From the NCBI RefSeq assembly GCF_000737315.1, contig NZ_JMCB01000003.1:248001-312000 (forward strand): DNA of 64,000 bases, written 5' to 3'. Source of the stretch: Hyalangium minutum (lineage in GTDB: Bacteria; Myxococcota; Myxococcia; Myxococcales; Myxococcaceae). Positions 1 to 49,938 of this stretch are shown here, in pieces. How positions within the stretch are numbered: position 1 is the stretch's first letter; each line of letters begins with the position of its first letter. The translations under genes and the position numbers were made by a program. A model generated the notes under the pieces. It did no database searches and had not been told where the DNA came from. It worked only from the letters and a program-made list of their open reading frames with translations.

Positions 1-116
1 CCCAGGCGAAGCTGATGGAGCGGCTGCGTCAGGAGATCTCGGTCCGTCGCTACCCGGAGCGGCTCAAGCTGGCAGAGGAGAAGAGCAAGCCCCAGGGCGA
101 GGGGGAGGCGAGATGA
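1..116 (+). CDS. 3' end of an upstream gene (partial), translationally coupled to the Rhs gene
   Basis: Open frame from position 3 (QAKLMERLRQEISVRRYPERLKLAEEKSKPQGEGEAR*) ends in TGA 114-116, overlapping the ATG at 113-115 (ATGA). Codons are strongly GC3-biased. Confidence 0.7.
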   Translation, partial: QAKLMERLRQEISVRRYPERLKLAEEKSKPQGEGEAR

Positions 117-3100
117 TCCGCCGCGCTCCGCGATGGCTGTGGCTCGTGCTGGGGCTGGTGACACTGGCCACGGCGTGCGACCGGCGCTCCAGCGAGGAGC
201 CCGCGTCCGCCGCGCCGCCCGCGCAGGCTGCTCAACAGGCACAGGCGCTGTCCGGAAGCACGTGCGACAGCGTGGCTCCCACCGGCATGGCGCCGGGGTG
301 GAAGGTGGCGCCGATCCAGGCTGCGGGCCAGAACGTCGCGAGCACGATCTTCCCGGCGTCCGTCGGTGAGCGGGCGATCCTGATCCTGCAGGAGTCGGCG
401 GAGGCGCTGAATCAGGAGTTCAAGACGGAGGCCTCCCTCAACGGTGTGGACTGGGTGGCCATCTCCCGGCAGAGGCCGCTGGCGGCGCGGGTGGTGCAGC
501 TGAGTGCCTCGAACCGGCTGGAGCTGGAGACGAACGGAGGCGTGGCACGGACGTCCGTGGCGGCGCTGTCGCCGCTGCCGTGCGCGGCGGTGGAGGCACG
601 CGTGACGCACGCGGGAGGCTCGGCCGCCACCGTGGAGACGCGCACCTTCACATGGCCCATGGGAGCAGGCCCGGCCCTGCTGGTGGTGGAGTCGGGCAGT
701 GCGTCGCAGGTGACGGGGCGGGTGGTGCTGGGCAGCCTGACGGTGCAGGTGCCGGCCGCAGGCCAGCTCCCCGTGGTGGAGGTGGTGTCGCCGCAGGCGA
801 GCAACACGCTGCGAGTCGAGGTGGGAGGCAGCGCGGGCGCGTGGGTCCGGGCAGTGGTGGTGGAGCCGGACATGTTGCCGCCCATCGTGAGCATGGGGCA
901 GCCCGCGGAGGGCGCGCAGCTGAACGCCTCGCCGGTGGAGGTCCAGGGCACCGCGGGAGCCGGGGCGGTGGCCGTGAAGGTGGGGGCGGTGGACGCGGTG
1001 CTGTCGCAAGGCCAGTACACGGCGCAGGTGCCGCTGGTGGAGGGGCCCAACGCGCTGGTGGCCGAGGTGAGAGACCAGTGCGGCAACGTGGCGCGAGTGT
1101 GCCGGCCGGTGGTGCTGACGACGGCGCCGCCCACCGTTGTTATCGAGGGAGTTACTGACGGCCAGGTCTCGCGCGAGCCACTGCACCCCACGTGGACGGT
1201 GACGAGCAGCGGCCCGGTCACGGTGGAGGCGACGCTGGATGGCGCGCCCTTCGTCGGCGGCACGGCTGTAACGGCCGAGGGCTCGCACGAGCTGCGGGTC
1301 ATGGTGCGGGACGCGGCGGGCCGGGAGGCGCAGGCGCAGGTGGGCTTCGCGATCGACACCACACCGCCGCGACTCACGCTGACAGGAGTGGAAGAGGGGG
1401 AGCGGCGCAATACTCCGGCGGTGCTCGGCTTCACGGTGGAGGAGGAGCACCCGGGCTCGGTGGAGGCCACCCTGGATGGGGCTCCCATGGCCTCGGGGGA
1501 CACGGTCTCGGCGGAGGGCGCGCATGTGTGGACGGTGGCGGCCACGGACGCGGCGGGCAACCGGTCCGAGGTGCAGCGCCACTTCGTGGTGGATGTGACG
1601 GCTCCCACGCTGGAGGTGCTCTCACCCGCGCCGGGCAGCTTCACCCAGGCGGGCTCCGTCGAGGTGGTGGTGGCGGCGGCGGATGACGGGCCGGTGGCGG
1701 GCGTGTGGCTGGGGAACGCGGAGCTGACGCTCGGCACGGACGGGAAGTACCGGAGCCTGGTGGTGTTGGAGGAGGGCAGCAACCTGCTGGTGCTGGTGGC
1801 TCGGGATGCGGCGGGCAACAGCGCGCAGAGCTCGCTGGCCGTGACGCGGGACTCCACGCCGCCCCAGCTCACCCTCACCACCCCGGCCGAGGGCGCGAAG
1901 GTGGCGGGGGACTCGGTGCAGGTGGAGGGACAGGCGCAGGACACCACGCCGCTCACGGTGCGCGTGGCGGGGATGACCGCGGCGGTCGCGGCGGATGGTC
2001 ACTTCCAGCTCTCGGTGGCCGTGGCGCAGGGCCCTGTCTCCCTGGAGGTGGTGGCCACGGATGCGGCGGGGAACACCGCGCGTCTGGTGCGCGGCATCCG
2101 CGTCAACACCACGCCCCCGAGGTTGGATCTGACGGCACCGGCCTCGGGCACGGTCACCGAGGAGTCCTCCATCGAGGTGTCCGGCTTCGCGAGGGCGGCG
2201 GATCGCACGGACACGGTGCGGGTAGAGGTGGCGGGAACCGAGCACGGTGTGAGGGCGGATGGCAGCTTCTCGGTGCAGGTGCCGCTGGAGGTGGGCCTGA
2301 ACACCGTGTCCGTCACGGCGGTGGATGGCTATGGCCTGCGCACCCCGCGCACCGTGCGGGTGGAGCGCCAGGGGCCTCAGGGGCCCGGTCCTGGAGATGG
2401 AGGCTCGGGAGACGGTTCGGGAGGCGGCACGGACGGAGGCTCGGGGGAAGACACCCCGGATGCAGGCAGCGGAGCGCCGGATGCGGGCTCGCCCGGTCCC
2501 GTGCCGGATGGCGGCATCCCGAGCGAGCCTCCGGTGCTGGTGCTGGCCTCGCCCCAGGAGAACAGCCTCTGGGGTGTGGAGCGGGTGTCGGTGCTGGGCC
2601 GTGTGGAGGGCGGAGACCTGCCGCTGCAGGTGACGGTGGATGGACTGCCAGCCGCGGTGACGGGGCGCCAGTTCTCCGCATCGGTGGCGCTGCCTGAAGG
2701 CTCCTCGATGCTGCACGTGCGCGCCGTGGACGCGCTGGGCCGGATCGCCGAGGTGCGGCGGCAGGTGAGGGTGGATCAGACACCGCCCTTCTTGGAAGTG
2801 ACGCGGCCGGAGCAGCCGTCGACGACCGTGAGCGAATCCCCATACCTGGTGGAGGGCCTCGCGGGAGACGCGTACCTCGCGGGCGTCACGGTGAACGGGG
2901 CGCCGGTGATGGTGCTGGCCGGGCACTTCTCGTCCTCGGTGGCCCTGGTCGCGGGAGACAACACCGTGGAGGTGGAGGCGGTGGATCTCGCGGGTAACCG
3001 CTCGCGCGCCGTCCGGACCTTGCGGGTGGAAGCGCTGCCGCCTCAGCTGACCGTGCTGGAGCCGGTCGATGGCTCGGAGGCCACCGAGCCGGTGGTGAGG

Positions 3101-6100
3101 GTGACGGTGAAGGTCGAGTCCTCCGCGCCGCTCGACGAGGTGCGCATCGGCACGGGCATCGCGGCGAACCTGGGCTCGGGCCAGTACACGGCCCAGGTGC
3201 CGCTGGCGCTGGGAGAGAACGTCATCCCCGTGAGCGCGCGGGACACGCTGGGGATGACGGGCTCGGCCACCGTGCGCGTGCGCTACCGCGATCCGAGCAC
3301 TGAGCCGTTGACCGTGACGGGGGTGGATCCCTCGGATCAGGCCACGGAGCTGGAGCCGGACACGCTGGTGAACGTGGCCTTCAACAAGGCCGTGAAGCCT
3401 GCGTCGGTGCGGGCGGGCTTCACGGTGAGCGTGGAAGGGCAGCCGCTGGCGGGCGGCTGGTCCGTCGCGCACGGAGCACAGATCGTCTCCTTCATTGCGC
3501 GCGATCCGCTGCCGGAGGGCGCCACGCTGCAGGTACGGGTAGCGGGCGTGGAGCCGGTGCAGGGGCCGGGGATGCAGGGCGAGTTCCGCAGCATGTTCAC
3601 GGTGCGCCGTCCACTGACCCGGCTGCGCGGCCAGGTGGTGGACGCGCGGCGCGAGCCCGTGTCCGGCGTACGGGTGGAGGTGGAGGGCCAGGGCCTCTTC
3701 ACGCGCACGGGAGCGGACGGCAACTGGGCCCTCTTTGGGGTGCAGCCGGGGCAGGTGGTGCTGCGCTACGAGGGAGGCGCCTCCTCGGAAGGGCAGGTCT
3801 TCCCCACGGTCCGCCGGCGGTTCGCCGTGGAGGCCGAGCGGGACAATGAGGAGTCCACCGTGGTGCTGACGCCCGTGGACGCCGAGTCCGCGGAGCCGGT
3901 GGATACCTCCCTGCCGCTGCACCTCACCTTTGGGGGGAGGCATGGGGCGCTGGAGGTGGACATCCCCGCGGGGGGGCTCATTCTCGAAGGAGGATCGACG
4001 CGCGGCCTGGTGACGCTCACGCAGCTGCCGCTCCACTCGCTCCCGGTGCCCACGGAAGGCGCCTTGCGCCCGGTGGTGGTGTGGCAGCTCCAGCCCGCCG
4101 GGACGCGCCTGGTGCGGCCGGTGGTGCTCCGCCTGCCCAATCGGCTGAGTGCGCCGCCCGGCAGCCGGGCCGCGCTGTTCACGTATGATCCCGAGGCGCA
4201 CCGGCTGCACATCGCGGGGCTGGCCACGCTCAGCGCGGATGGCACACAGCTCGTGTCGGACGGTGTGCTCGAGGCCGGCTCGCTGGAGTACTTCGGCTAC
4301 CTGCCGCTGCCCGAGGAGTCCTCCGTCGCGCGGGCCGGGGCCGTCTCTCCCCGTGTGGCGAACCTGGGCCCGCTGCCCCGGCCACCGTCTGACGGGCTCA
4401 TCCGCCCGCTGACCCAGGGCTTCGGGCTGGATCCTGGCAGCGCGCTCGCCATCTGGGACTCCTACCAGCCCTTCATCGCTCCCGCCGCCGTCATGGGGAC
4501 GGTCCGAGGGCCTCGCGAGCAGGCGGTGGCCCTCGATCTCTCCTCGCCGAGCCTGGGCGAGTCGCGGCGGGTGGCGTTGGATTCGCAGCTGCGCTACCGG
4601 ATGCCGCTCTCGGTTCAGGCCCGCTCGCTCTATCCCCTCTCGAGCAGTGGCCGGGATTCGCTCGTGCTGGCCCTCGAGGGCGTGGGCCCCGAGGGACAAC
4701 GGCTGGGGCCGCCCAGCGGGGGCTCCTGGCGGCAGGAGAGCCCCCAGGGGCAGCGCGCGGAGCTGTCCACGCAGGTCGAACTCTCGCTCGGGACCAGCTC
4801 GCTCTGGGCCACGGGCACCACGGCGCGCGGACGCAACGTACTCCGGCTGAACGCCGAGCTGTCCCTGGCGGATGGAGGCGTACCGGATGGGGGCGCGACC
4901 TCGGGATTGCTGCGCGTCCAGCGGGGGGATGGAGGCTCGGCAGGAGGGGAGGACAGTGAGGGACTGGTCCGCTTCGCGGGCATGCCTGTCCGGGTGACCG
5001 ATGGCTGGCACGAAGGAGGGTCGATCTCCGGCCCGGCGGGCCGGTATGCCGCCTCGATCATCATGCTCCAGTCCTCCTGGATCCCTCCCGCGTCGGTCCT
5101 GGCCTGTGTTCGCCTGCCCATCGGATGGAACGTCCAGAGCTGGGTGGCGTGGGATGGCCGTGTCCGCACGCGCAAGGCCCCCTCCACCGCGGAGGAGTGC
5201 TCGGGCCCCTGGGAAGTCCTGGCCTGGCCTTCGCCCATCATCCCCGACATCGACGTGCTCGTGGATGTGCGGTGGTTGCACGGCAACATCACGTTCGTGG
5301 ATCGGCAGGGCGAGCCGCTCCCGCCGCCGTGCAGCGACTTGGTGGTGCGCCAGGGCACCGAGGTGACCGGGCTGTCGCAAGACGCCGTGCGGAGCACGGA
5401 GGTTCACTTCTTCCGGGAGGATAATCTCTCCACCCCCATCGTCAGCTACGCCGTCGCGGATCCCGAGCAGTGTGACTCGTATCCGGGGGCCCCGCATGGC
5501 CGCTATGCCAAGGTCCGCTACGGTCCCTCCACCCTGAGCCGCGTGGCCTCGCGCCGCGACAGCCAGCGGTTGCTCCCGGGGGACCGGCTGGTGGTGTTCG
5601 CCGTCAACCATGCCACGGGCTATTCGGGCATGGAGGTCGTCACCGTTCCCTCCGTCAACCAATCCTCTCGCGCCGAGGATGGGAGCTGCCCGGCGGATGA
5701 CGCCGCGGGCGGCCCGATGGCCGTGCAAGATGGGAGTCGCACGGTCTCCGTCTCTCGCTGCACGCTGCAGGATCTCGGCATCGAGGCGGATCTCAAGCTG
5801 TACCCGCCGGAGATCGACGTGCGTGTGGAGCGCCAGTCTCGGGCCGAGGGATCTTCCCAGGAGGCCCTGGAGCCCAGCCTTGTCCGCCATAAGGGCGCGG
5901 CCACGACGCGGGACAACTTCGTGAGCGTTGCCACGCACTGGCGCGTCCGGCGCCAGCCCGCGCGCTCGTGGGATCCGGGGGTGTTGCCTCCCGTGAATTC
6001 TTCCTGCGAGGGCGGGAGCCAGGCGGCTGGAAGCACCTGTGCGCCCCAGATCCTCCTGGACGAGGGCCCGCGAGGCACATGGGCGGAGCACTACTGCGGG

Positions 6101-9100
6101 GAACTTCCCGAGCCGCGGACCCCCGAGCAGCAGGCCCTCTGCCTGAAGGATGACCGCGAGCTGGCGGAGGTTCCGGTGGGGGTACCGCCCCTGGCTGGGC
6201 GCGTGGTGCGCATCACTGGCTCGGCGGTGGAGGAGCCAGCGGTGGCGAGCTTCCACGTGGCCCCGGGCCGCTCCACGACGACCGTGCAGACAGCGCTGCG
6301 GCGAGTGGAGCGGGACGGGCGCGAGGTGGTGCTCAACAACCTGACGCGTGCCTACTACTACGTGCAGGTGGTGGGGCACCCCGTGCTCCCGCGGGATCGC
6401 AACAGCGATGGCACGCTGGATCCCTCGGAGGAGAACGCGCCGCCGCCCGACTTCGAGGATGATGAGGACGCCCCGGGGATTCCCGAGGGAGTCGTCACGC
6501 TGAAGAGCGTCTACCGGAGCGTGGAGCCCGAGGGGCGCATCGAGCGCTACGATCGAGCGCTCGAGCACGAGTTCCGGGTGATGGAAGTGGGCTCCTCCCG
6601 GGTCACGGCACGGACGGAGCGGGGCGAGGAGCGCCCGCTGCCCCAGCCGGGGCAGCCTCCGTCGTCTGCGGCCGCCAGCCCGGAGGACGTGGCCTATCAG
6701 TTCCTGCTCAATCTGCTGGAGCCAGAAGATCCGGGGCGGACGGGGCCGCCGAGCAGCCAGTACGTGCTGCGGCTGGGCACGGACTCCTTCGGCATCGAGT
6801 GCCCCATCGAGCTGAACGCCTCGGCGGGCACGCTGCGTGGCACGTGCGAGGGCGAGTACCTGCCGGAGGTGCTGAGCGCGGGGGATGTGCTCTACCTCGA
6901 GGTGTACTTGCGCGGTAACGCGGAGAACGTGCTGTACCGCTTCAACTTCGACGGTCTGTCCATGCGGGAGGACTACCTGGGGGCCTCCAGCCGGTTCACC
7001 GCCCACCGCGCGGTGGAGCAGCAGAATGGCAAGCCCGTGGAGGATCGGCCGATCTCCCGGCTGAACGAGGCGCACTTCTTCCTCTCGCCTCACGAGCTCA
7101 GCTCAGGACGGATCCGGCTCTGCACCAACGCGGAGTGCTCGGGCGACGGGGCGGTCATCAAGGACGCCACCGTCTTGTGGACGGCGGCGGGCTCCTACGC
7201 GGTGAGCGAGCAGGCGACGGGCAGTGCTCCGGGGCGGCTGGTCCAGGAGGTCACGTCAGGCGCAGGGAACGCGCGCCACCTTCGGCTGGGACTGCCTGCC
7301 TCGGTGACGGCGATGCCGGGGATCGCGGCGGCGGGCGCGGGGATCTTCCTGGTCAAGGACAGCGAGTCTCCGCCACGAGCGCGGCAGGTGGAGCGCCTGG
7401 GAACGCCGAAGGGACGCTTCCAGGGGCTGAACGCGCAGGCGCCGGGCCAGGAGGCCGTGGCGGGCATCAATGTGGCGGATCTGCACCTGGCCCTGACGCA
7501 CACGGACTTCGCGGTGCCGCAGCTCGCGGGAGAGGTCTCCTTCTCCAGGACCTATGCCAACCAGAACGATCTGCCCTCGCCCATGGGCGTGGGCTGGAGG
7601 CACGAGCTGGACGGCTTCGTGCTCGAGGAGAGCCTCGGCCGCTATGTCGTGAACCTGGGTGGGCAGGCCTGGGGCTTCATCCGGTGCACCACCGTGGATG
7701 AGGAAGCGCAGACCGCCAGCGGGTGCATGACGGACAAGACCCACGGCATGTCGCTGAAGGTTGACAGCGAGGGCGTCCAGCTCACCACGGAGCAGGGGAG
7801 TGTGTACCGGTTCAACCGGCCGGCGGTGAAGCGGGACCAGGAGGGCCGGCGCAAGTGGCTGCTGACCAAGTTCCACGATGGCCATGGCCGAGGCGAGCAG
7901 GACGGGTGGACGCACCTCACCTATGCCGAGGGCACCAACCGGCTCACGCAAGCGAAGCGCACGCCTGGGGAGCTGTCGCTGGAGCTCAAGTACTGCGAGG
8001 ACTTCTCCCGCGAGGACTGCGATGGCGTGGCGCCGGACGCGCCTGGCAACCTCAAGTTCCTGGCGCGCAGCGAGGGCTTCAAGCTGCTGAAGGGCGTGGT
8101 TCTCAAGAACAGCCAGGGCCAGGAGCTGCACATCGTGCGCTTCAAGCACGACCGGTGGGGCAACCTGCTGGAGGCCGAGCGCACCACGGATCCGCCCACG
8201 CAGAAGTGGAAGTACACCTACGCGCCCATTGCCGATGACGTGCCGTCCATGATGGCCTGGCGTGCCATCAATGAGCTGTCCGAGGCTCGCCTCGAGGTGG
8301 CTGGTCATCCCCAGTGGGTCGCCACCTACGGGCGCGGCGGCGCCGAGTGCTATGCGCACCTCGAGGCCTTCGAGTGTGTGAGCTCGGTGACGCAGACAGG
8401 CTTCATGGGCAACGTCCTTCAGGTGCAGGGCGAGGCGGGCCATCGCCAGCTCAAGCTCCCCACGGGGAACTCCGCGGAGGTGTCACTCAATGAGTATGGG
8501 AACGTCACCTCCTCGGCGTCGGAGGGGCAGGCGGCGCGGCGGCTGACGTGGCCCAGCTCCCAGCGCGGGGGCGAGGTGCGGCTGGAGAAGTCAGTCTCTC
8601 CGAGCGGCCGGACCCTGCGCTATGGCACGGATCACCAGCTGCGCCTGGACGAGGTGAAGCTGGAGGGGAGCTCGGACGTGGTGGGGCTCGAAGCGGGGGC
8701 GCTCGTCTCCGTGTTGGCACGCGATGCCCGGGGCTTGCCTACCTCGGGGAAGCTGTCCACGGCCAATGGTCCGGCCGAGTGGTCCATGCCCCGCTCTCAG
8801 TCGGGGGACGTGCTGGGCCTCTCACTGGGGGGCACGCAGCTCTTCTCGCGGGTCACGGACGAGGAGGGCCGGATCACCTCGGAGCGGGATGCGCTGGGCA
8901 ATACGACCACGTTCACGTTTGGCGCGTTGGGGTTGCCTGTCAGGATCCAGGTGTCCTCGGACTCCGCGACGTCGGGGCTCGTCCGCTACACGCTGGTGCT
9001 GGAGTACGACGCCTATGGGCGTCTGATCCGCCGCTTCAATGAGACGACGGGCGAAGCGGAGTCCTGGCGTTACGACGGCCAGGGCAACATGCTCGAGCAC

Positions 9101-12100
9101 ACGCTCACGGGGGAGCCGTCCGAACGGTGGACGTACACCTATACGTACGGCGATCAGCGGCTCACCGTGGTGGAGCGCCTGGAAGGCACGGCCTACACCC
9201 GCACCGCCCTCTTCGAGCAGGGGCTGCTGAAGAGCGAGCAGCTCAGCTACGGCACGGGCAACGCGTCACGTGCCTATGAGTACGAGGGCGGGCGGCTCAA
9301 GAAGAAGACAGACGAGCTGTCAGTCACCTGGGAATACACCTACGACAGCGCGGGCCGGCTGAAGGTGGTGAAAGCGAATGGCCGGACCGTGGAGTCCTAC
9401 GGGCTGGATGAGGACGGCATCCTCATCTCCACCACGGACCGCGAAGGGCACACCACCCAGATCGGCAACGACTCGCTGGGGAGACCCGTCTCGTGGACCT
9501 ATGAGGATGGGTACAAGGAGGAGGTGCGGCGGGATGCCCAGGGCGCCATCGTCTGGGAGAAGAAAATGTCTCCCGGCGCGGACAGAGCCCACGTCTTCGC
9601 TCAAGAGGTGGACGCGCTCGGACAGGTTCTGAGCCGCCGGAGCGCGGAAAATGGGAGCGGAGTGGAGATCGTCTCCACCTATGACGCCGCGGGGAGAGTG
9701 CGGACGCGAGAGGATCGGGGCAGGGGCCTGAACGAGTCCTTCGAGTATGGTGACGTGCTCGGAAGGCTGACGCGCTATCAGCGGACCGTGGCGTCCGCCG
9801 CGGGGAGCCAGAACTGGATCGAGACCCGTCAATACGTGGATGAAGGGGGCCGCACGGAGCTCCGCATCCTGCGCCAGATCGACACGGGTTTAGGGCCGCG
9901 GCAAGAGAACCAGGTCCTGGTGCTGGATGCGCTGGGGCGGGTGCTGAAGGACCAGCGTCTGGGTGCGGGGGTCTTCGAGTACACCTACGACGCGCGAGGC
10001 AACGTGCTGGAGCGTCGGCACTCCGTGCTGGGAACCACGTCGTATACCTACGACGGGTTGGGGAACCTGCTGTCGATGACGGAGCCGGGGGGCGTCACCA
10101 CCACGTACACGGTGGATGCGGCAGGCCGGGTGCTCACGCAGGAGGGGCCTCACGATCAGGAGCGGTGGACGTTCACCTACGATCTGTTCGACCGGCCGCT
10201 GACGCAGGTGCTGGCGCAGGCCGGGAGCTCGCCGCAGGCTGCGTGGAGCTTCGAGTATCCGGGGAATGGGATCGTCATTGAGACGGATCCTCTGAGTATC
10301 GCGACGACCCGGCGTTTCAACTCGCGCGAGCTGCTGCTCTCGGAGGAGCGAGGGAGCCAGACGGCGGAGTACGCCTACGATGGAACGTGGCCTCGCCTGC
10401 ACCTCATCTCCCATGAAGGTTCGGAGCGGAAGCTGACGCGGAGCTTCGATGACCTCGGGCGGCCGCTCCAGCAGGTGGAGTTCTGGAAACAGGGGGACCA
10501 CTCCTATACGTACAGCACGACCACGGCTTGGACGGGCAGGCGCGGGACTCGCCAGGAGCGGTGGGAGGCCACGGACGCGAGCGTCCGGACGCTCACGGCG
10601 ACGATCCGGGTGGACGGGCTGGGGAACCTCATCGAGCAGGAGCAGGGGGGCCTGACGGACGCTTGGGCCTACGATGCGGCCGGACTGTTGGCACGTGAGG
10701 CACTGGCGGGGCGTCCGGAAAAGCGCTTCTTCTACGAGCAGGATCGGCTCGTCCGGATGGAGAACGGCTCGGAGACGACGCTGTACGAGTATGACGCCGC
10801 GGGCCGGCAGTGGAAGGAGACGGATCCTTCGGGGCGCGAGCGCACGCGGGTCTACAACGCACAGGGCCTGGTGGCGAGCGAGCGCTTCGGAGCAGGGGAG
10901 ACGCTGGAGTCCGCGTACACTTACGATCGAGGCGGGGGCCTCCGGACGCTGACGCGTGGCGGGGCACAGTGGAACTTCACGCATGGGCCTCGGGGGGAAC
11001 TCCAGGCCGTCGAACTTCCGGGCGGGCTGGGGACCTTCACCTATCAATACGATGCCTTGCTGCAGCTCAAGGGGGTGACGCCTCCAGAGGGCGGGGGAGC
11101 AGCGGCACAGACCTTCGCGTATGACAACTGGGGCCGGCAGCTGCGCCGGACCCGAGGCTCCAGCGTCTGGTCCACGGCCTGGCAGGGCGGGTTGAGCACC
11201 ACGAGCGACCCGAATGGCGACGTGGTGGAGCAGCTCTACGACGGCCGCGGCCGCGTCGTGCGTGAGCGCTTCGCTCCCGGGAACAGCAGCCGGCCCTTCC
11301 ATGATCTGACAGCGGTGACGTACGCCTATGACGGGCTCGACCAGCTGCTGTTGGCGCAGGAGAGCCGCATCTCGGGAGCGGTCTCCAATGTGTATGACTA
11401 TGACGGGCGGAGCCGGCTGATCTCGATGCGGCGCGGCAGCGAGGAGATCTCATACACATACACGGAGAGCGGGCAGAAGCGGACGGTCACGTCTCCGTCC
11501 GGCACGTTGCGCTACGAATACGACGCGCAGGATCGGGTGCGGCGCATCGAGAGCAGCCAGGGGCCGGTGGTGGCGGTGGGCTGGGAGCCGGGAGGTCTGC
11601 TCTCGGAGGTCAGTGGCAACGGGGTGGTGGAGCGGTACGCGTATTGGGGCCATGGGCTCATCCGCTCCATCGCTTCGCAGTGGGACGGCCCCTCGGCGGG
11701 CACGCTGCGGTACGAGTACGGCTACGATGTGCGCGGCAACCGCCTGGAAGAGCGCTACACGGCACCGGGGGCCACGGCGTTCGAGGTGACGCAATTCGGG
11801 TACGACGCGGCGGACCGGCTGACCGGGGTGCGCTACCCCACAGGCGAGGCCGAACTCTACCTCCTGGCAGCTGACGGCTCGCGCCTGGAGGAGAAGCACC
11901 TGCAGGGGTACTCAGGGGGACTGACTCCCCAGGCGCTGGCCAACGCCACGAATGCCACCCAGCACTGGCGGTACGCGTATGACACCGCGGGAGGGCTGCA
12001 ACGCATTGATGACGTGTTGACGGGGGGCGTGGAAGCCCAGGTCACCACGGACGCGGGAGGCCGCGTCGTCGCGGAGATGCGAGGTGGCACCACGCGGCAG

Positions 12101-14161
12101 TATGGCTGGGACGCAGGAGGGCGGCTCGCTTCGACCAAGCGGATCACCGCGCAGGAGACGGTCGAAGCCTCATATGCGTATGGCTTTGACGGACTGCGGC
12201 GGACTCGGACCGTGAACGGAGTGAGCACCCGGTATGTGTGGGGTGCGAACGAAGAGCTGCTCGAAGAAGGGCCGGCTGTGGGAAGTCGGCTGTTGTATGC
12301 CCAGGCAGGCTTCGGAGCGGTGGCGGCGGGAGGAGAGCGGCTGCTGCGGGATGCGCTGGGCAGTGTCGTGGGGCGCGTGGGTCCGTCCACGGAGCTGTCT
12401 CGCTATGGCGCGTGGGGCGCACTCCGGCAGGGAGCGCCGCCCCAGGGCATGGAACCGTCCCTGGCCTACGCGGGGCAATCTCTCGACAGCGAAACAGGGC
12501 TGAGCTACGCGCAGCAGCGTTGGTACAGCTCGGAGACCGGGCGTTTCCTCTCGGAGGATCCCCTGGGAGCGGCGGCGTACCTCTCGACCCCGACCGAGCT
12601 GAACCCCTGGCTCTATGCGAGGTCCAATCCCCTGACGTACCTGGATCCCTCGGGTTTGTGGTCCTGGTCTCAGGCTGGAGTGGGGCTGGCCAGAGCTGGC
12701 AGGAAAGCCTGGCATGAAACGGCCAATGCTTTCTCGTGGGCCGCTCGTCCTCTGAACGGCGCGTTCGGAGTGTCCTCGGGACACTACGACAAGAAGGGAC
12801 GATGGAGGCTTCGGGATACAGGCACCTTCAAAGAGGAGGCGAAGAAGCAGCTCAAGCAGATCAAGGAGGTCGCGGAGTACGTGAAGGACCACCCGGTGGA
12901 GACGGTGACTGGGCTGGTGGTGGAGCCGGCGAAGGCGATCGGTACCGGGATTGCGGCCTGTGTCGTCGGCGCGACGACGCAGGGCGTGGTGGGCGACGAG
13001 GCGAGCCGTGACTGTGGCGAGATGCTCCCGAAGGCGATCGGATCGGTAGCGGGCACTTTCTCCGGGGCAGGCGCGGCGATCCGGACCGCAGGACGCGTCC
13101 GGCGTGCCGCGGCAGATATGCGTACGGCCATGAGGAGGAGCGTCTCGGCCGCTGATGACATGGCCAGGACGAGGCTGGGCCCGCAGCGCGGATGGCCTGA
13201 CGAGGCCCCGAAGCCCGCGAGGGCCGGCGCCAATGACTGCGCGGGTGGGGTCTGCCAACGCCCAGGACAATGCTTCGTGGCGGGCACTCCCGTCCTGACC
13301 CAGGAAGGTCTCAAGCCCATTGAGCAGATTGTCGAAGGGGAACTGGTCTGGTCACGTAACGAGGAGACGGGCCAATCGGATTGGCGGCCCGTGGTGCGGA
13401 CGTTCGTGACGCCGGACCAGCCAGTGCTGAGACTGGAGCTGACGGACGAGGCCGGTCAGCGCACCGTGCTGGGAGTGACTGGGGAGCACCCGTTCTGGGT
13501 GAAAGACCTGGGATGGGTGGGAGCGTCGTCGCTGCTCCCCGGTCAGCAGGTGGCCAGCGCGCACGGAGGATGGCTCAAGGTGGGGGCCGCGACGTGGGAG
13601 CAGGCGCGCGCCACCGTCTTCAACTTCGAAGTGGAGGAATTCCACACCTACTTCGTGGGCGACGTCGGCGCGTGGGTCCACAACAGCTGTCAGCAGCCAT
13701 GGTTGTTCGCGGCGGGACAGGGGGATGTGTACACGCTCCTGGAGAAATTCAGGAAGACTCACACGTTAGGGAAAGCGGAGACCTTTGCGCTGGCAATGCT
13801 GGAGAGTGGTGAGCGTGCATTTGGAATCAACTCGGGTTTGTTCAAGGGCAGGGATTCCCGGATTCATGGCTTTGAAATGTTGAGGGAGCACGGGTTGCTG
13901 AAGAAAGCCACCATATACAGTCAGGAGCCCTTCCTGCTGCACGCAGAGGCTCTGGCGGTCATTCGTCTGTGGGAGCGGCTGCAGGGCAAAGACCTTTCAC
14001 TGATTCGGCTGTACGTCGACAACCCAACCTGCAAGCTGTGTCTGAGCGGCCTTCCCAGACTGCAAGTGGCGCTTGGGATCAAACGCTTGGAGATTTATGG
14101 CCCGGGAACCATTCACATCAGCAAGCCGTCTCTCCACCCCATTGACCTTCTCAAGAATTGA
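113..14161 (+). CDS. Giant lipoprotein Rhs/YD-repeat polymorphic toxin (Ig-like repeats, Rhs core, HINT, deaminase-like C-terminus), 4682 aa
   Basis: Lipobox LATA-C22 (TGC 176-178). About nine Ig-like repeats ending in D(A/L)xG(N), a Big_5-like and a carboxypeptidase-regulatory-like domain, a DUF6531-like segment (SFSRTYANQ...MGVGWRH), and many YD repeats. Rhs core end GRFLSEDPLG...NPLTYLDPSG (D at 12644). HINT CFVAGT...VHN 13271-13684. HAE (13940) and PTCKLC (Cys at 14030, 14039). Confidence 0.93.
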   Translation: MIRRAPRWLWLVLGLVTLATACDRRSSEEPASAAPPAQAAQQAQALSGSTCDSVAPTGMAPGWKVAPIQAAGQNVASTIFPASVGERAILILQESAEALNQEFKTEASLNGVDWVAISRQRPLAARVVQLSASNRLELETNGGVARTSVAALSPLPCAAVEARVTHAGGSAATVETRTFTWPMGAGPALLVVESGSASQVTGRVVLGSLTVQVPAAGQLPVVEVVSPQASNTLRVEVGGSAGAWVRAVVVEPDMLPPIVSMGQPAEGAQLNASPVEVQGTAGAGAVAVKVGAVDAVLSQGQYTAQVPLVEGPNALVAEVRDQCGNVARVCRPVVLTTAPPTVVIEGVTDGQVSREPLHPTWTVTSSGPVTVEATLDGAPFVGGTAVTAEGSHELRVMVRDAAGREAQAQVGFAIDTTPPRLTLTGVEEGERRNTPAVLGFTVEEEHPGSVEATLDGAPMASGDTVSAEGAHVWTVAATDAAGNRSEVQRHFVVDVTAPTLEVLSPAPGSFTQAGSVEVVVAAADDGPVAGVWLGNAELTLGTDGKYRSLVVLEEGSNLLVLVARDAAGNSAQSSLAVTRDSTPPQLTLTTPAEGAKVAGDSVQVEGQAQDTTPLTVRVAGMTAAVAADGHFQLSVAVAQGPVSLEVVATDAAGNTARLVRGIRVNTTPPRLDLTAPASGTVTEESSIEVSGFARAADRTDTVRVEVAGTEHGVRADGSFSVQVPLEVGLNTVSVTAVDGYGLRTPRTVRVERQGPQGPGPGDGGSGDGSGGGTDGGSGEDTPDAGSGAPDAGSPGPVPDGGIPSEPPVLVLASPQENSLWGVERVSVLGRVEGGDLPLQVTVDGLPAAVTGRQFSASVALPEGSSMLHVRAVDALGRIAEVRRQVRVDQTPPFLEVTRPEQPSTTVSESPYLVEGLAGDAYLAGVTVNGAPVMVLAGHFSSSVALVAGDNTVEVEAVDLAGNRSRAVRTLRVEALPPQLTVLEPVDGSEATEPVVRVTVKVESSAPLDEVRIGTGIAANLGSGQYTAQVPLALGENVIPVSARDTLGMTGSATVRVRYRDPSTEPLTVTGVDPSDQATELEPDTLVNVAFNKAVKPASVRAGFTVSVEGQPLAGGWSVAHGAQIVSFIARDPLPEGATLQVRVAGVEPVQGPGMQGEFRSMFTVRRPLTRLRGQVVDARREPVSGVRVEVEGQGLFTRTGADGNWALFGVQPGQVVLRYEGGASSEGQVFPTVRRRFAVEAERDNEESTVVLTPVDAESAEPVDTSLPLHLTFGGRHGALEVDIPAGGLILEGGSTRGLVTLTQLPLHSLPVPTEGALRPVVVWQLQPAGTRLVRPVVLRLPNRLSAPPGSRAALFTYDPEAHRLHIAGLATLSADGTQLVSDGVLEAGSLEYFGYLPLPEESSVARAGAVSPRVANLGPLPRPPSDGLIRPLTQGFGLDPGSALAIWDSYQPFIAPAAVMGTVRGPREQAVALDLSSPSLGESRRVALDSQLRYRMPLSVQARSLYPLSSSGRDSLVLALEGVGPEGQRLGPPSGGSWRQESPQGQRAELSTQVELSLGTSSLWATGTTARGRNVLRLNAELSLADGGVPDGGATSGLLRVQRGDGGSAGGEDSEGLVRFAGMPVRVTDGWHEGGSISGPAGRYAASIIMLQSSWIPPASVLACVRLPIGWNVQSWVAWDGRVRTRKAPSTAEECSGPWEVLAWPSPIIPDIDVLVDVRWLHGNITFVDRQGEPLPPPCSDLVVRQGTEVTGLSQDAVRSTEVHFFREDNLSTPIVSYAVADPEQCDSYPGAPHGRYAKVRYGPSTLSRVASRRDSQRLLPGDRLVVFAVNHATGYSGMEVVTVPSVNQSSRAEDGSCPADDAAGGPMAVQDGSRTVSVSRCTLQDLGIEADLKLYPPEIDVRVERQSRAEGSSQEALEPSLVRHKGAATTRDNFVSVATHWRVRRQPARSWDPGVLPPVNSSCEGGSQAAGSTCAPQILLDEGPRGTWAEHYCGELPEPRTPEQQALCLKDDRELAEVPVGVPPLAGRVVRITGSAVEEPAVASFHVAPGRSTTTVQTALRRVERDGREVVLNNLTRAYYYVQVVGHPVLPRDRNSDGTLDPSEENAPPPDFEDDEDAPGIPEGVVTLKSVYRSVEPEGRIERYDRALEHEFRVMEVGSSRVTARTERGEERPLPQPGQPPSSAAASPEDVAYQFLLNLLEPEDPGRTGPPSSQYVLRLGTDSFGIECPIELNASAGTLRGTCEGEYLPEVLSAGDVLYLEVYLRGNAENVLYRFNFDGLSMREDYLGASSRFTAHRAVEQQNGKPVEDRPISRLNEAHFFLSPHELSSGRIRLCTNAECSGDGAVIKDATVLWTAAGSYAVSEQATGSAPGRLVQEVTSGAGNARHLRLGLPASVTAMPGIAAAGAGIFLVKDSESPPRARQVERLGTPKGRFQGLNAQAPGQEAVAGINVADLHLALTHTDFAVPQLAGEVSFSRTYANQNDLPSPMGVGWRHELDGFVLEESLGRYVVNLGGQAWGFIRCTTVDEEAQTASGCMTDKTHGMSLKVDSEGVQLTTEQGSVYRFNRPAVKRDQEGRRKWLLTKFHDGHGRGEQDGWTHLTYAEGTNRLTQAKRTPGELSLELKYCEDFSREDCDGVAPDAPGNLKFLARSEGFKLLKGVVLKNSQGQELHIVRFKHDRWGNLLEAERTTDPPTQKWKYTYAPIADDVPSMMAWRAINELSEARLEVAGHPQWVATYGRGGAECYAHLEAFECVSSVTQTGFMGNVLQVQGEAGHRQLKLPTGNSAEVSLNEYGNVTSSASEGQAARRLTWPSSQRGGEVRLEKSVSPSGRTLRYGTDHQLRLDEVKLEGSSDVVGLEAGALVSVLARDARGLPTSGKLSTANGPAEWSMPRSQSGDVLGLSLGGTQLFSRVTDEEGRITSERDALGNTTTFTFGALGLPVRIQVSSDSATSGLVRYTLVLEYDAYGRLIRRFNETTGEAESWRYDGQGNMLEHTLTGEPSERWTYTYTYGDQRLTVVERLEGTAYTRTALFEQGLLKSEQLSYGTGNASRAYEYEGGRLKKKTDELSVTWEYTYDSAGRLKVVKANGRTVESYGLDEDGILISTTDREGHTTQIGNDSLGRPVSWTYEDGYKEEVRRDAQGAIVWEKKMSPGADRAHVFAQEVDALGQVLSRRSAENGSGVEIVSTYDAAGRVRTREDRGRGLNESFEYGDVLGRLTRYQRTVASAAGSQNWIETRQYVDEGGRTELRILRQIDTGLGPRQENQVLVLDALGRVLKDQRLGAGVFEYTYDARGNVLERRHSVLGTTSYTYDGLGNLLSMTEPGGVTTTYTVDAAGRVLTQEGPHDQERWTFTYDLFDRPLTQVLAQAGSSPQAAWSFEYPGNGIVIETDPLSIATTRRFNSRELLLSEERGSQTAEYAYDGTWPRLHLISHEGSERKLTRSFDDLGRPLQQVEFWKQGDHSYTYSTTTAWTGRRGTRQERWEATDASVRTLTATIRVDGLGNLIEQEQGGLTDAWAYDAAGLLAREALAGRPEKRFFYEQDRLVRMENGSETTLYEYDAAGRQWKETDPSGRERTRVYNAQGLVASERFGAGETLESAYTYDRGGGLRTLTRGGAQWNFTHGPRGELQAVELPGGLGTFTYQYDALLQLKGVTPPEGGGAAAQTFAYDNWGRQLRRTRGSSVWSTAWQGGLSTTSDPNGDVVEQLYDGRGRVVRERFAPGNSSRPFHDLTAVTYAYDGLDQLLLAQESRISGAVSNVYDYDGRSRLISMRRGSEEISYTYTESGQKRTVTSPSGTLRYEYDAQDRVRRIESSQGPVVAVGWEPGGLLSEVSGNGVVERYAYWGHGLIRSIASQWDGPSAGTLRYEYGYDVRGNRLEERYTAPGATAFEVTQFGYDAADRLTGVRYPTGEAELYLLAADGSRLEEKHLQGYSGGLTPQALANATNATQHWRYAYDTAGGLQRIDDVLTGGVEAQVTTDAGGRVVAEMRGGTTRQYGWDAGGRLASTKRITAQETVEASYAYGFDGLRRTRTVNGVSTRYVWGANEELLEEGPAVGSRLLYAQAGFGAVAAGGERLLRDALGSVVGRVGPSTELSRYGAWGALRQGAPPQGMEPSLAYAGQSLDSETGLSYAQQRWYSSETGRFLSEDPLGAAAYLSTPTELNPWLYARSNPLTYLDPSGLWSWSQAGVGLARAGRKAWHETANAFSWAARPLNGAFGVSSGHYDKKGRWRLRDTGTFKEEAKKQLKQIKEVAEYVKDHPVETVTGLVVEPAKAIGTGIAACVVGATTQGVVGDEASRDCGEMLPKAIGSVAGTFSGAGAAIRTAGRVRRAAADMRTAMRRSVSAADDMARTRLGPQRGWPDEAPKPARAGANDCAGGVCQRPGQCFVAGTPVLTQEGLKPIEQIVEGELVWSRNEETGQSDWRPVVRTFVTPDQPVLRLELTDEAGQRTVLGVTGEHPFWVKDLGWVGASSLLPGQQVASAHGGWLKVGAATWEQARATVFNFEVEEFHTYFVGDVGAWVHNSCQQPWLFAAGQGDVYTLLEKFRKTHTLGKAETFALAMLESGERAFGINSGLFKGRDSRIHGFEMLREHGLLKKATIYSQEPFLLHAEALAVIRLWERLQGKDLSLIRLYVDNPTCKLCLSGLPRLQVALGIKRLEIYGPGTIHISKPSLHPIDLLKN
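881..3290 (+). repeat. Tandem bacterial Ig-like domain repeats (about 9) with a central Gly/Asp-rich linker
   Basis: Recurrent units of about 80-90 aa start PP(x)L(x)(L/V)xxP and end (V/A)xAxD(A/L)xGN. Linker GPGPGDGGSGDGSGGGTDGG...PDAG at about 2370-2520. Boundaries are approximate. Confidence 0.75.
13271..13684 (+). other. Pre-toxin HINT / bacterial intein-like domain within the Rhs protein (138 aa)
   Basis: Block A C1FVAGTPV, block B TGEHPFW (TxxH), block F VFNFEVEEFHTYFV, block G WVHN followed by Ser(+1). Confidence 0.92.
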
Positions 14162-14173
14162 CCCGGCATATAG

Positions 14174-15640
14174 CTATTGCGCCTGCGGATTCTGAGTCGT
14201 GGGCGGGCGCGCTCGTTCCCAAGCAGGGTCGTAGCACTCCTCCTGCCACTGGTAGGTATCGTCGCTGCATGGCGGTCTCTTGTCGGCCACGCGCACCCAG
14301 CAGCCGCCATGAATGATTTTCTCCCAGTCTCGCTTGCACGGGGGGCGGCGCTGGCCCGGGAGCGGTTGCTTGGGCATGTCCAGGGAGATGGATCTGGCCT
14401 CAGAGGGAATCGATTGAACTTCCATCCGAGTGGTGAGCGCATCGTCTCCCAATCCGCGGGTACCGGCATCTGGCTCCATGCCCGCATCCAGCGCTTCAGC
14501 ACGCGCCGTCTCAGACGGCTTTGCGCTCCACTCGGGAGCCATCCAGCAGGGCCCCACCACCGCCAGAGACATCGTGAGCAGCGCGAGGAGATTCCTCCAA
14601 GGGACGGGCCGAACTTGCTGCCTCGCCTGGAGAGTTCCTGCTTTGTGCTCAGTAGCTTTGGCTGGGGCCGTCTTCGCATCGACGGGCCTCGCGGGCCCGG
14701 CTTGAGTCTGTACCGCAGGCTTCACTGAAGCCCAGAGAGGAACATCCGCTGCGGAACCTAGATGCTCCGCCGAGGTTTCCGCTGCTTGTGCCAACTCACT
14801 TGCCGTCCCGCGAGCCTCAGGCTCCGCCGCGAGCAGCCGCTCCACCAGCGCCGAGAGCTCAGGCACCACTCGGGGGTTGAGTTCATGCGTGCATTGGCGT
14901 CGCGCAACTCCACCCTGGATTTGTTTCTTGAGGTCTTCAGGCTCCGTGCCAGGAGGGGGATAGATCCGAGTCAATAACCGGTACAGCGTCACGCCCAGCG
15001 CATAGAGATCGTCCGCCGGGGTGGCGTGGTAGCGCGCTCCCGGCGTGCTCCAGTGTTGCCACTCGAAGCGTAGCGCCTCGGGGCTGCGGTACTCAGGCGT
15101 GTTGGGAGGCAGCACCCGATGGGTGAGTGGGGGAGCGCCCTTCCACGTGCCCGAACCAAAATCCGTGAGCACCGCCCGGCCCTCGGGCTCCACAAGAATG
15201 TTGTCGCCCTTCAGGTCGCGGTGCAGGCATTCCCCGCGGTGCAACACCTCCAACCCCCATGCCAGCTGGGCCACCACCCGGAGCACTTCGCGGCTGGTGG
15301 GAGTGTGCATCCGCGCCCACTCGTACAGCCGCTGGCCCCGGATCCACTCCATCACCACATAGGGATGCCGGACTCCAGGCTCGGCCTCCCACCAACCTTG
15401 GTCGATGAGTCGAGGCACGGCCGGGTGGCGGGTGCGTCTGAGCAACTCCACCTCCCGTTCGAAGCGCGGGTCATGAGGGAACACCGCCATCTTCAGTGCC
15501 ACGGGCGGGGAGCCCGGGTCGTCGGCGCGCCGGGCGCGGAACACGGCGCCGTAGCTGCCCCGGCCGGCATAGCCCTCGATGCGCCAGGGGCCGACCAGAT
15601 CTCCGATGTTCAGCGAGTCAGGTGTCCTCGTGCCCGTCAT
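14174..15640 (-). CDS. Hanks-type Ser/Thr protein kinase with a TM helix and a Cys-rich C-terminal domain
   Basis: GRGSYG, VALK, HRDLKGDN, DFG and TPEYRSPE motifs; hydrophobic LLALLTMSLAVVG; C-terminal PGQRRPPC...GGCW...RPPC...CY. Confidence 0.92.
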   Translation of the reverse strand: MTGTRTPDSLNIGDLVGPWRIEGYAGRGSYGAVFRARRADDPGSPPVALKMAVFPHDPRFEREVELLRRTRHPAVPRLIDQGWWEAEPGVRHPYVVMEWIRGQRLYEWARMHTPTSREVLRVVAQLAWGLEVLHRGECLHRDLKGDNILVEPEGRAVLTDFGSGTWKGAPPLTHRVLPPNTPEYRSPEALRFEWQHWSTPGARYHATPADDLYALGVTLYRLLTRIYPPPGTEPEDLKKQIQGGVARRQCTHELNPRVVPELSALVERLLAAEPEARGTASELAQAAETSAEHLGSAADVPLWASVKPAVQTQAGPARPVDAKTAPAKATEHKAGTLQARQQVRPVPWRNLLALLTMSLAVVGPCWMAPEWSAKPSETARAEALDAGMEPDAGTRGLGDDALTTRMEVQSIPSEARSISLDMPKQPLPGQRRPPCKRDWEKIIHGGCWVRVADKRPPCSDDTYQWQEECYDPAWERARPPTTQNPQAQ

Positions 15641-15809
15641 GGCACCGGAGACTACCCAAGGGGTCGCTCGCCGTCATGCCGCTCTTTCAGGTAGGATGGC
15701 GGCGATGGAGAATCTCCCGAGAGAGACGGAGCGTCTCCGGCCGTGGACGGTTCACAGGCGTCTCGCTCTGGCAACCGCTTGGCTCGGGAGTTGCTTGAGG
15801 CCGGGCGGT

Positions 15810-16910
15810 ATGACGGGACTGCACGACCGATTCTTCCGCTACCTCTTCAACCACACCGCGCGCACCGAGGCTTTGCTGCGGCACAACCTGCCCGCGTTCC
15901 TCATGGCCGAGGTGGATTGGCCGTCGCTGCGGCGAGAGTCCGGCACGCTGGTCGACGGCGAGCGCGAGACTCGCAAGGACCTGCTCTTCTCCGCCCGCTG
16001 TCTCCAGTCCGCACCGGAGGAGCCTCCGCACTTCTTTCTCATCGAGCATCAATCCTCGGTGGACCCGTGGATGGCACTGCGGATGCACGACTACGCTTGG
16101 CGTCTCATCCAGCACTGGCGAGAGCAGCACCCCCAGAGCCGATGGATTCCCGAGGTGACGCCCCTGGTGGTGTACCCCCGGCAAGGTCGGACGTGGTCAG
16201 CGCCCCTGCGGCTGGGTGACCACTATCTGGTGCGAGCGCGCGCGGACAAAGAGGGGCTGCCTTGGATTTTGCGTTCTGGGTACTGGATGGACGCCGTCTC
16301 GAACGAGCAGGAGGCACGGGCTCACGGGGGACCACCGCTGGTTTCTCTGGGATTGCTGGTGCTCAGCTTCGCGGGTACGCGGCAATTGGCGAGGAGGTTG
16401 CCGCACTGGTGCGATCTGTTTGCCCAGGTGTACGCGACAGATGGTCCCCAAACGCTCTATCGCATGGTGCGCTATGTGCACCATCTGGGGGACGAGGAGG
16501 CCGTTGCGGCAATTCGGCGCGTGCTACATTCCATTATGGAGTCCACAAGGGCGGAGGCGTTCATGCGAACCATGGCAGAGGTGCTCAAAGAGCGGGGACG
16601 CCGCGAGGGGTGGATCGAGGGGAAGGCAGAAGGGAAGGCCGAGGGGAAGGCCGAGGGGAAGGCCGAGGGGAAGGCCGAGGGGAAGGCCGAGGGGAAGGCC
16701 GAGGGGAAGGCCGAGGGGCTCGCCGAGGGAGAGGCCAAGGGCTTGGTCAAGGCTCTCCTCCGCTTGTTAGCGGCACGAGGCCTACGTGTCGATGAGGCCT
16801 CCCAGGAGCGCATCCAGAATTGCGGCGATGTCGCCACACTGGAGCGCTGGCTCGACCGGGCTCTGAACGCTACGCGGCTCACCGACGTCCTGGACGGCCC
16901 CGCGCAGTAA
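15810..16910 (+). CDS. Rpn/YhgA-like (Transposase_31) PD-(D/E)XK-type nuclease, 366 aa
   Basis: Family N-terminus MTGLHDRFFRYLF with GAGG at 15797-15800 before ATG 15810 (the track start at 15579 is too long). KDLLF...LIEHQS core; (GKAE)n repeats; DUF4351-like tail LERWLDRALNATRLTDVL. Confidence 0.88.
   Translation: MTGLHDRFFRYLFNHTARTEALLRHNLPAFLMAEVDWPSLRRESGTLVDGERETRKDLLFSARCLQSAPEEPPHFFLIEHQSSVDPWMALRMHDYAWRLIQHWREQHPQSRWIPEVTPLVVYPRQGRTWSAPLRLGDHYLVRARADKEGLPWILRSGYWMDAVSNEQEARAHGGPPLVSLGLLVLSFAGTRQLARRLPHWCDLFAQVYATDGPQTLYRMVRYVHHLGDEEAVAAIRRVLHSIMESTRAEAFMRTMAEVLKERGRREGWIEGKAEGKAEGKAEGKAEGKAEGKAEGKAEGKAEGLAEGEAKGLVKALLRLLAARGLRVDEASQERIQNCGDVATLERWLDRALNATRLTDVLDGPAQ
16620..16739 (+). 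repeat. In-frame 12-bp tandem repeat GGGAAGGCCGAG encoding (GKAE)n
   Basis: Seven perfect copies at 16632-16715, one variant at 16620-16631 and two degenerate copies at 16716-16739. Confidence 0.97.
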
Positions 16911-48518: not shown

Positions 48519-48529
48519 CGGAGACCCAC

Positions 48530-49027: not shown

Positions 49028-49152
49028 GACTGCAGAAACAATTTGGTGGAGTTGTGAAATTGCAAGCTGACAGAGCAAGAACTGCGCTTGTGTTAAAGCA
49101 CTGTCAGCCAAGTCCATTGCCGGCCATTTGCGACACAGCACCACCTGGAACT

Positions 49153-49896: not shown

Positions 49897-49938
49897 CGGA
49901 GTGAGTATGAGTGCTTTGGCCAAGAGAGTTGCCCGCAT

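Follow-up and report, generated by a model that had tools for sequence, protein, structure and literature searches.

A 14-kb Hyalangium minutum gene for a predicted lipoprotein Rhs toxin with a variable, deaminase-like tip

We describe a giant Rhs gene of the myxobacterium Hyalangium minutum DSM 14724, which lies at the start of a 64-kb stretch of contig NZ_JMCB01000003.1 (positions 248,001 to 312,000 of the forward strand; the whole stretch is called the window). Its product is read as a giant polymorphic Rhs toxin that would be exported through Sec and signal peptidase II (Sec/SPII), be released upon contact and act independently of a type VI secretion system (T6SS), with display on the cell surface as the likelier arrangement; from the sequence evidence, the probability of this reading is put at about 0.7. 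The comparisons below give good support to a T6SS-independent polymorphic toxin whose tips vary on a conserved body. The 14-kb gene is a well-built but fairly ordinary example of the known very large T6SS-independent Rhs toxins of myxobacteria. Its previously unremarked details are a coupled lipoprotein peptidyl-prolyl isomerase (PPIase), a conserved disulfide-rich module and a giant co-operonic neighbor.

The gene is a single unbroken open reading frame (ORF) of 4,682 codons on the + strand, from the ATG at 113 to the stop codon at 14159-14161. GGAGG lies 7 nucleotides (nt) 5' of the ATG, and third-position GC is 0.86, similar to that of neighboring genes. The translation is an exact record in NCBI assembly GCA_000737315.1 (contig JMCB01000003.1). 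From the N-terminus, the protein consists of a lipobox signal peptide, about 11 immunoglobulin (Ig)-like or beta-sandwich domains, a module of about 1,200 amino acids (aa), DUF6531 with an Rhs shell, a 204-aa linker, a PT-HINT domain and a MafB19-like deaminase. A preliminary description of the window had proposed one ORF joining a lipoprotein signal, an Ig stalk, an Rhs shell, a HINT domain and a deaminase-like tip, and the intact frame, Pfam and NCBIfam scans and motifs bear this out. The parts are as follows.

113..178, + strand: signal peptide and lipobox, aa 1-22 (MIRRAPRWLWLVLGLVTLATA then C22), by a PROSITE PS51257-type rule
179..877, + strand: N-terminal region without a Pfam family, aa 23-255, including an Ala/Gln/Pro-rich tether after the predicted lipid anchor (translation; Pfam)
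878..2362, + strand: first Ig-like array, aa 256-750, six repeats of ~80-86 aa (Pfam Glucodextran_B, Big_13, Big_7)
2363..2530, + strand: Gly/Pro/Asp/Ser-rich low-complexity hinge, aa 751-806 (translation)
2531..3292, + strand: second Ig-like array, aa 807-1060, three repeats (best Glucodextran_B stretch at aa 892-972)
3299..3586, + strand: Big_5 Ig-like domain, aa 1063-1158 (PF13205, 28.9 bits, cut-off 23.6)
3623..3862, + strand: transthyretin-like CarboxypepD_reg beta-sandwich, aa 1171-~1250 (PF13620 match at aa 1171-1220, 27.9 bits, below the cut-off of 32.3)
3863..7462, + strand: family-specific middle module, aa 1251-2450, mostly beta (relatives in myxobacteria only; Cys alignment)
7487..7621, + strand: DUF6531, which commonly precedes Rhs repeats, aa 2459-2503 (PF20148, 29.4 bits, cut-off 24.1)
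7622..12658, + strand: Rhs/YD shell, aa 2504-4182 (RHS_repeat 156.6 bits, YD_repeat_2x 121.8 bits)
12659..13270, + strand: post-cleavage linker, aa 4183-4386 (204 aa), with Gly/Ala-rich hydrophobic stretches and no Pfam family
13271..13684, + strand: PT-HINT (bacterial intein-like) autoprotease, aa 4387-4524 (PF07591, 82.1 bits)
13685..14161, + strand: MafB19-like deaminase-fold toxin, aa 4525-4682 (158 aa), with the stop codon (HAE, C4640-x-x-C4643)

The conserved body and exchangeable tip were seen most clearly in the family. Relatives of the middle module occurred in myxobacteria only; the protein database gave a few fragments, with full-length giant orthologs seemingly absent from it, and species-representative genomes gave 25 loci, which belong to Hyalangium, Cystobacter, Archangium, Pyxidicoccus, Citreicoccus, Corallococcus, Myxococcus and metagenome-assembled genomes, at 33-73% identity. 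Stalk, middle module and shell are common to these loci, and the 10 complete orthologous ORFs encode 4,026-5,791 aa. Conservation runs through YAQQRWY..GRFLSEDP as far as the DPxG motif, beyond which the 14 tails compared are unrelated. Ortholog tips comprise a PIN domain (L009), a YwqJ deaminase (L014), a Tox-MPTase5 metallopeptidase (L015), a Tox-HNH-EHHH family (L019) and several without a family. Compared with its closest relative (L002), the protein shows 60-87% identity per 100 residues as far as aa ~4300 and only noise beyond, which places the exchange point ~170 residues past the Rhs cleavage site, so that the linker belongs to the conserved part; it is common to both proteins up to about aa 4350. 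The combination of a conserved N-terminus with variable C-termini, which the preliminary description had named as a point to survey, was thus found across the family.

The N-terminus, MIRRAPRWLWLVLGLVTLATA followed by C22DRR, satisfies a lipobox rule of the PROSITE PS51257 type. This rule, rather than a predictor, was used for all lipoprotein calls (positive n-region, hydrophobic h-region, and a lipobox Cys within residues 15-35). The lipobox Cys is present in 13 of the 15 family N-termini including that of H. minutum (12 of 14 orthologs), and Sec/SPII export, as first proposed, is well supported by sequence under this rule. The two exceptions, L011 and L024, have ordinary non-lipoprotein signal peptides, so a lipid anchor is usual in the family, not obligatory. 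In L024, an RCC1-like Cys/Gly-rich repeat region replaces the first Ig array. The H. minutum lipobox reads A-T-A-C with Leu at -4, and most orthologs have L-A-G-C. Residue +2 is Asp and residue +7 is Glu, with Gly, Pro, Arg or Lys at +2 in the orthologs; in Myxococcus xanthus, +2 Lys directs lipoproteins to the inner membrane and +7 Ala to the matrix (PMC3222651).

Behind the tether, Ig repeats begin at aa 254, 336, 416, 495, 581, 666, ~806, ~888 and 974, and Pfam matches on the stalk are Glucodextran_B in 7 stretches together with Big_13, Big_7 and Big_5. With the nine repeats, the Big_5 domain and the sub-threshold CarboxypepD_reg sandwich, which was also recorded for the orthologous fragments P0066 and P0068-P0070, the original count of about 11 Ig or beta-sandwich domains is a fair one.

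The middle module (aa 1250-2450) had no Pfam or NCBIfam family match. It carries 14 Cys at aa 1665-2342, all of them invariant or at least 90% conserved in an alignment of 20 sequences. The Cys-containing stretch without a family match is therefore present as first described, at a length of ~1,200 aa and not ~1000. Because 14 conserved Cys is the pattern expected of disulfides formed outside the cytoplasm, this pattern supports an extracytoplasmic, disulfide-rich module. An AlphaFold2 (AF2) model of aa 1230-2429 was poor (pLDDT 49, from a 9-row alignment), and Foldseek matched it to generic multi-sandwich proteins at a TM of ~0.06. In the first part of the module (aa ~1270-1400, window 3920-4310) there is a weak ZU5-like signal: Pfam ZU5 matches 7 of 17 orthologs (best E 0.016) and Foldseek returned the ZU5 domains of ankyrin and UNC5 (3kbt_C). 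ZU5 is a known N-terminal autoprotease in some RHS toxins (PMC3482391). We do not claim this identity, as the signal is too weak and the usual autoproteolytic motif is not evident in the alignment.

The shell ends in an Rhs-associated core at aa 4098-4182 (TIGR03696, Rhs_assc_core, 64.5 bits) with DPLG at 4149 and PLTYLDPSGL at 4173-4182, from which aspartyl autocleavage after L4182 is predicted. Sequence matches in the PDB over aa 2906-4190 were the Rhs cages 7q97, 8qja, 8h8a and 7pq5. In the HINT domain, the Pfam match spans aa 4394-4525 (cut-off 27.7 bits), the solved bacterial intein-like domain 2lwy is matched at E 7.6e-18, and the catalytic residues are intact: C4387, T4456-G-E-H and H4523-N4524, followed by S4525.

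The tip by itself scored 22.4-22.8 bits against Pfam MafB19-deam (PF14437), under the cut-off of 27. A word-indexed protein search with the tip found no relatives. An exhaustive HMMER search of 1.84 billion representatives gave 62 matches, of which 7 were repeat-protein false positives; nearly all of the remaining ~55 are C-terminal in their proteins. Relatives of the tip stand behind HINT domains, behind Rhs cores or beside an extracellular contractile injection system (eCIS) gene. By these searches, the tip belongs to a rare deaminase sub-group with ~55 true representatives in the 1.84 billion. In an alignment of 28 sequences (the tip and 27 relatives), G, H-A-E, D and C-x-x-C are invariant, and MafB19-deam matched 26 of the 28 (best E 4e-14). 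A profile search of the PDB with this alignment gave marginal deaminase matches (E 0.008-0.5). The AF2 model of the tip had a pLDDT of 85 and a pTM of 0.81, and its best PDB matches were almost all deaminases (DYW, CDA, DddA, APOBEC) at modest scores (E 0.015, TM 0.55). Alignment and model together support a deaminase-fold domain. GC over the last 450 nt, the tip, is 0.55 as opposed to ~0.68 for most of the window, a foreign composition.

Rhs cages self-cleave at DPxGL and enclose their C-terminal fragment, and deaminase toxins have nucleic acids as their substrates inside the target. On this background, the conserved motifs lead us to infer the following processing steps. The protein would be exported unfolded via Sec and lipidated at Cys22 by way of signal peptidase II, and it would fold outside the cytoplasm, probably aided by a translationally coupled lipoprotein parvulin PPIase. 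The lipid would anchor the Ig stalk, to which the disulfide-rich module and then the Rhs cage are joined. The aspartyl site PLTYLDPSGL would cut after L4182, with the 500-aa cargo (Gly-rich hydrophobic linker, HINT and the 158-aa MafB19-like deaminase) staying inside the cage. Contact with another cell would release the cargo, the hydrophobic Gly-rich linker may help it across the membrane, and HINT (C4387, HN4524|S) would free the deaminase, whose substrate in the cytoplasm of the target would be nucleic acid or nucleotides. Toxin release is the role proposed for HINT domains near the tip (PMC3482391).

The PPIase gene lies directly upstream and reaches into the window.

1..116, + strand: 3' end of the gene for a parvulin-type lipoprotein PPIase of 278-289 aa, with the remainder before position 1; the stop codon TGA (114-116) overlaps the Rhs ATG (113-115)

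Its stop and the Rhs start thus overlap as ATGA at 113-116. The full gene (L001:9135-10004; Pfam Rotamase, 68 bits) encodes a predicted lipoprotein (...LAVLSG|CDDS) with Asp at +2, as in the Rhs toxin. In 14 related loci, a PPIase gene stands directly 5' of the giant Rhs gene, with a lipobox in all 12 of the N-termini read. In four Myxococcus loci, two or three tandem lipoprotein PPIase paralogs precede the giant Rhs gene. From this arrangement it may reasonably be inferred that the PPIase is a PrsA-like foldase dedicated to a giant exported protein rich in beta structure; no description of a coupled PPIase foldase for giant Rhs proteins was found in the literature consulted on such toxins. 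Upstream of the PPIase, outside the window on the same contig (L001:1-9138), is a gene for a 10,488-aa protein, which ends 29 nt before the annotated GTG of the PPIase and whose stop overlaps an in-frame PPIase ATG, that of the 289-aa form, as ATGA, so that this gene, the PPIase gene and the Rhs gene form one operon with two ATGA overlaps. In the last 3,045 aa of this protein there are Big_7 Ig domains, several Cys-rich C-x-NG-x-DDDGDG modules and long beta-rich stretches of repetitive sequence, with no toxin family among them. Relatives of the 10,488-aa gene precede the PPIase-Rhs pair in at least 7 other myxobacterial loci.

Very large Rhs proteins with signal peptides are known from myxobacteria (Wall laboratory review, PMC10433427; PMC10047993). 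Rhs4 and Rhs5 (~4,000 aa) are reported to mediate M. xanthus kin discrimination when both outer-membrane exchange and the T6SS are inactivated, and they are presumed to be surface-located like the toxins of contact-dependent inhibition (CDI) (PMC10433427; PMC10047993). The H. minutum protein resembles Rhs4 and Rhs5, as that review summarizes them from Vassallo et al. 2020, in being myxobacterial, ~4,000-5,000 aa long and composed of a signal sequence and an Rhs shell with a polymorphic toxin at the C-terminus. It differs in that theirs, in the same summary, lie on Mx-alpha prophages with immunity genes, whereas the H. minutum gene lies among housekeeping genes, behind a PPIase and without an immunity gene. 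By analogy with these very large M. xanthus proteins, display on the surface, as known from CDI or WapA, is judged likelier than the other delivery routes considered. A Sec-dependent RHS toxin class with releasing HINT peptidases was already listed by Zhang et al. 2012 (PMC3482391). Bacillus subtilis WapA, of the type II secretion system (T2SS)/Sec-dependent RHS class (PMC3482391), likewise carries a Sec signal and a surface tether as well as an Rhs cage with a toxin at the C-terminus, but it is tethered to a Gram-positive cell wall, whereas a lipid tether in a diderm requires an outer-membrane crossing step. No CDI feature (two-partner secretion (TPS) domain, filamentous haemagglutinin (FHA) repeats or cdiB) was found in the protein or its neighborhood. 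As for the tip, MafB19-like deaminases (PF14437; Iyer et al. 2011, PMC3239186) have the HAE ... CxxC zinc site in common with it and likewise stand at the C-terminus of polymorphic toxins, whereas the H. minutum domain is below cut-off and falls in a rare sub-group with its own small immunity family.

The preliminary description had considered the delivery route to be newly distinct from T6SS-Rhs and CDI. Its central idea is right in substance and not new, since the M. xanthus Rhs proteins (PMC10433427) and the YD-shell lipoproteins of Myxococcota (PMC13018210) precede it.

Several observations weigh against the proposed toxin and its delivery. The tip's own MafB19-deam score is sub-threshold and its deaminase activity is a prediction. 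The A-T-A-C lipobox is less canonical than those of the orthologs, and the lipoprotein call was made by rule. The published M. xanthus sorting residues are absent here (+2 Asp, +7 Glu), so those rules do not apply. A protein of ~500 kDa that is lipidated at its N-terminus must still reach the surface of a diderm cell. M. xanthus Rhs4 and Rhs5 are likened to this protein by description and are not placed in its family by sequence. Finally, no cognate immunity gene was found in the 74 kb examined, an uncommon situation for a toxin deployed among kin.

The last of these points bears on what this copy does. In 11 orthologous loci, a small ORF with lower third-position GC starts at or within ~35 nt of the stop, overlapping it in 4; among the products are two SUKH-3 immunity proteins, one TPR protein and one pentapeptide-repeat protein. 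Likewise, in the 5 tip relatives examined, an ORF of 58-144 aa (the shortest cut by a contig end) begins 8-47 nt past the stop, and because these ORFs are mutually related (blastp 1e-5 to 1e-26) they are taken as a cognate immunity family. Directly 3' of the H. minutum Rhs stop there is no small immunity-like ORF, and neither tblastn nor HMM searches found the deaminase-linked family in the 64-kb window and the 10 kb upstream of it (best E ~1). Two candidates were rejected: the Ser/Thr kinase on the opposite strand, as a membrane kinase, and an antisense ORF at 14177-14728, as an Arg-rich shadow ORF. The kinase gene (14174-15640, - strand) is convergent and ends 13 nt past the toxin stop. It encodes a Cys-rich ectodomain besides a C-terminal membrane segment, and the third-position GC of its 3' half, ~0.65-0.70, is unusually low for the genome, which would fit joint acquisition of this half and the toxin tip. 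Beyond it is an Rpn/YhgA-like (Transposase_31) gene (window 15579-16910, + strand) with an internal (EGKA)n repeat, a 70%-identical copy of which lies downstream of the closest related locus (L002), and which may mark a rearrangement-prone spot. In L002, the toxin stop is followed by a gene for a 477-aa secreted TPR-containing protein and no small ORF. The H. minutum immunity gene may be located at another site in the genome, a rearrangement by the Rpn-like gene may have removed it, or a non-kin target may make it unneeded.

The missing immunity gene weakens a simple kin-weapon reading for this copy, and it is conceivable, though unlikely, that the copy is no working kin weapon at all, having an inactive or tolerated tip without immunity, aiming at non-kin prey or serving mainly as an adhesin. 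The empty 13-nt interval before the kinase gene, the absence of the deaminase-linked family from the 74 kb, the same lack of a small downstream ORF in the closest relative, the hint of rearrangement from the Rpn/YhgA-like gene beside both loci and the foreign GC of the tip would all fit such a copy. Set against them are the intact HAE, CxxC and HINT catalytic residues and an uninterrupted 14-kb ORF, and an immunity gene may sit elsewhere in the genome.

Transfer by outer-membrane exchange is improbable to a similar degree. The protein would in that case be a lipoprotein of the inner leaflet of the outer membrane, passed on by TraAB-dependent exchange like SitA, with the cargo released from the recipient periplasm. 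The conserved lipobox is consistent with this, as is the lack of +2 Lys and +7 Ala, which would make the outer membrane the default under M. xanthus rules (PMC3222651), and lipoproteins are described as being moved in bulk by such exchange (PMC5562445, PMC8546572). However, the tested large M. xanthus Rhs toxins killed in traA and T6SS mutants too (PMC10433427), neither traA, traB nor sitB/sitI-type genes were found in the window, an 11-Ig stalk has no obvious role in the periplasm, and L011 and L024 have non-lipoprotein signal peptides. SitA toxins are also myxobacterial lipoprotein polymorphic toxins, but they are small, lack an Rhs cage or Ig stalk and are encoded in sitBAI cassettes, none of which is in the window. 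It is a rather doubtful proposition that the 10,488-aa protein as a surface protein, the PrsA-like lipoprotein PPIase and the Ig-stalk Rhs protein form a dedicated envelope apparatus, which would export the half-megadalton toxin and present it on diderm cells, or pass it between them, by a route other than the T6SS, CDI or SitA, with the immunity-less Hyalangium copies perhaps aimed at prey.

A bacterial teneurin-like protein (TLP), with the order BIG, TTR, TIP, FN-plug, NHL, YD-shell, toxin, is a quite unlikely identity. The TLPs reported in 2026 (Raoelijaona et al., PMC13018210) are, in Myxococcota, predicted Sec/SPII lipoproteins with Ig, transthyretin (TTR), insert, FN-plug, NHL, YD-shell and polymorphic tip regions and an immunity gene usually downstream, and some have HINT tips. 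The H. minutum protein has a similar order of Ig-like stalk, TTR-like sandwich, long insert, plug-type domain, DPxG-cleaved YD shell and polymorphic tip. Unlike TLPs, it has no FN-plug or NHL detected by Pfam, and its Rhs-type shell is preceded by DUF6531. Pfam searches up to E 0.01 matched no NHL, FN-plug or TEN_* family, the PDB sequence matches are T6SS-type Rhs cages and not teneurins, and the published screen lists for GCA_000737315.1 one TLP, a different gene of 2,032 aa (PMC13018210); the teneurin-like identity was rejected on these three grounds.

The preliminary description had seen no PAAR, VgrG or T6SS adaptor in the protein or the window, and Pfam and NCBIfam scans of the protein and scans of the other window genes agree, with no T6SS, PAAR or VgrG family in either. 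Although the shell is closest in sequence to solved T6SS Rhs cages, the chance that the protein is T6SS cargo like most Gram-negative Rhs proteins is close to negligible, as a lipobox signal peptide replaces the PAAR or VgrG-binding domain, conserved Cys pairs suggest extracytoplasmic disulfides, no T6SS gene is nearby and 4,682 aa far exceeds known T6SS cargo.

Kin and non-kin are distinguished in myxobacteria by several toxin systems that depend on contact, which may also serve to kill prey; among them, the very large Rhs class is understood least. The present locus refines the picture of Rhs toxins and does not change it. It offers as handles a conserved lipobox, a lipoprotein PPIase coupled by ATGA and a disulfide-rich module between stalk and cage. 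Its tip belongs to a rare deaminase sub-family; enzymes of this sort draw interest as tools for base editing. The absence of an immunity gene here leads one to ask which cells are targeted.

The rest of the window is of a housekeeping nature, with genes for Fe-S assembly, beta-oxidation, a sugar ATP-binding cassette (ABC) transporter with LamB, ribosomal protein S1, guaB, guaA and an M3 peptidase, among others. Scans of the window for tRNA genes and Rfam families gave no match. A low-GC island at 48500-50630 (GC 0.60) holds two ORFs with lipoprotein-type N-termini, which could be a small lipoprotein toxin/immunity pair.

49024-49896: island ORF, ...MLISIG then C, with an HNHPFGG motif and no Pfam match
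49939-50556: island ORF, ...LMFVS then C, with no Pfam match

At 54437-57340 (- strand), the window encodes a 967-aa protein that combines an N-terminal PilZ domain with a full Hsp70/DnaK-like ATPase.

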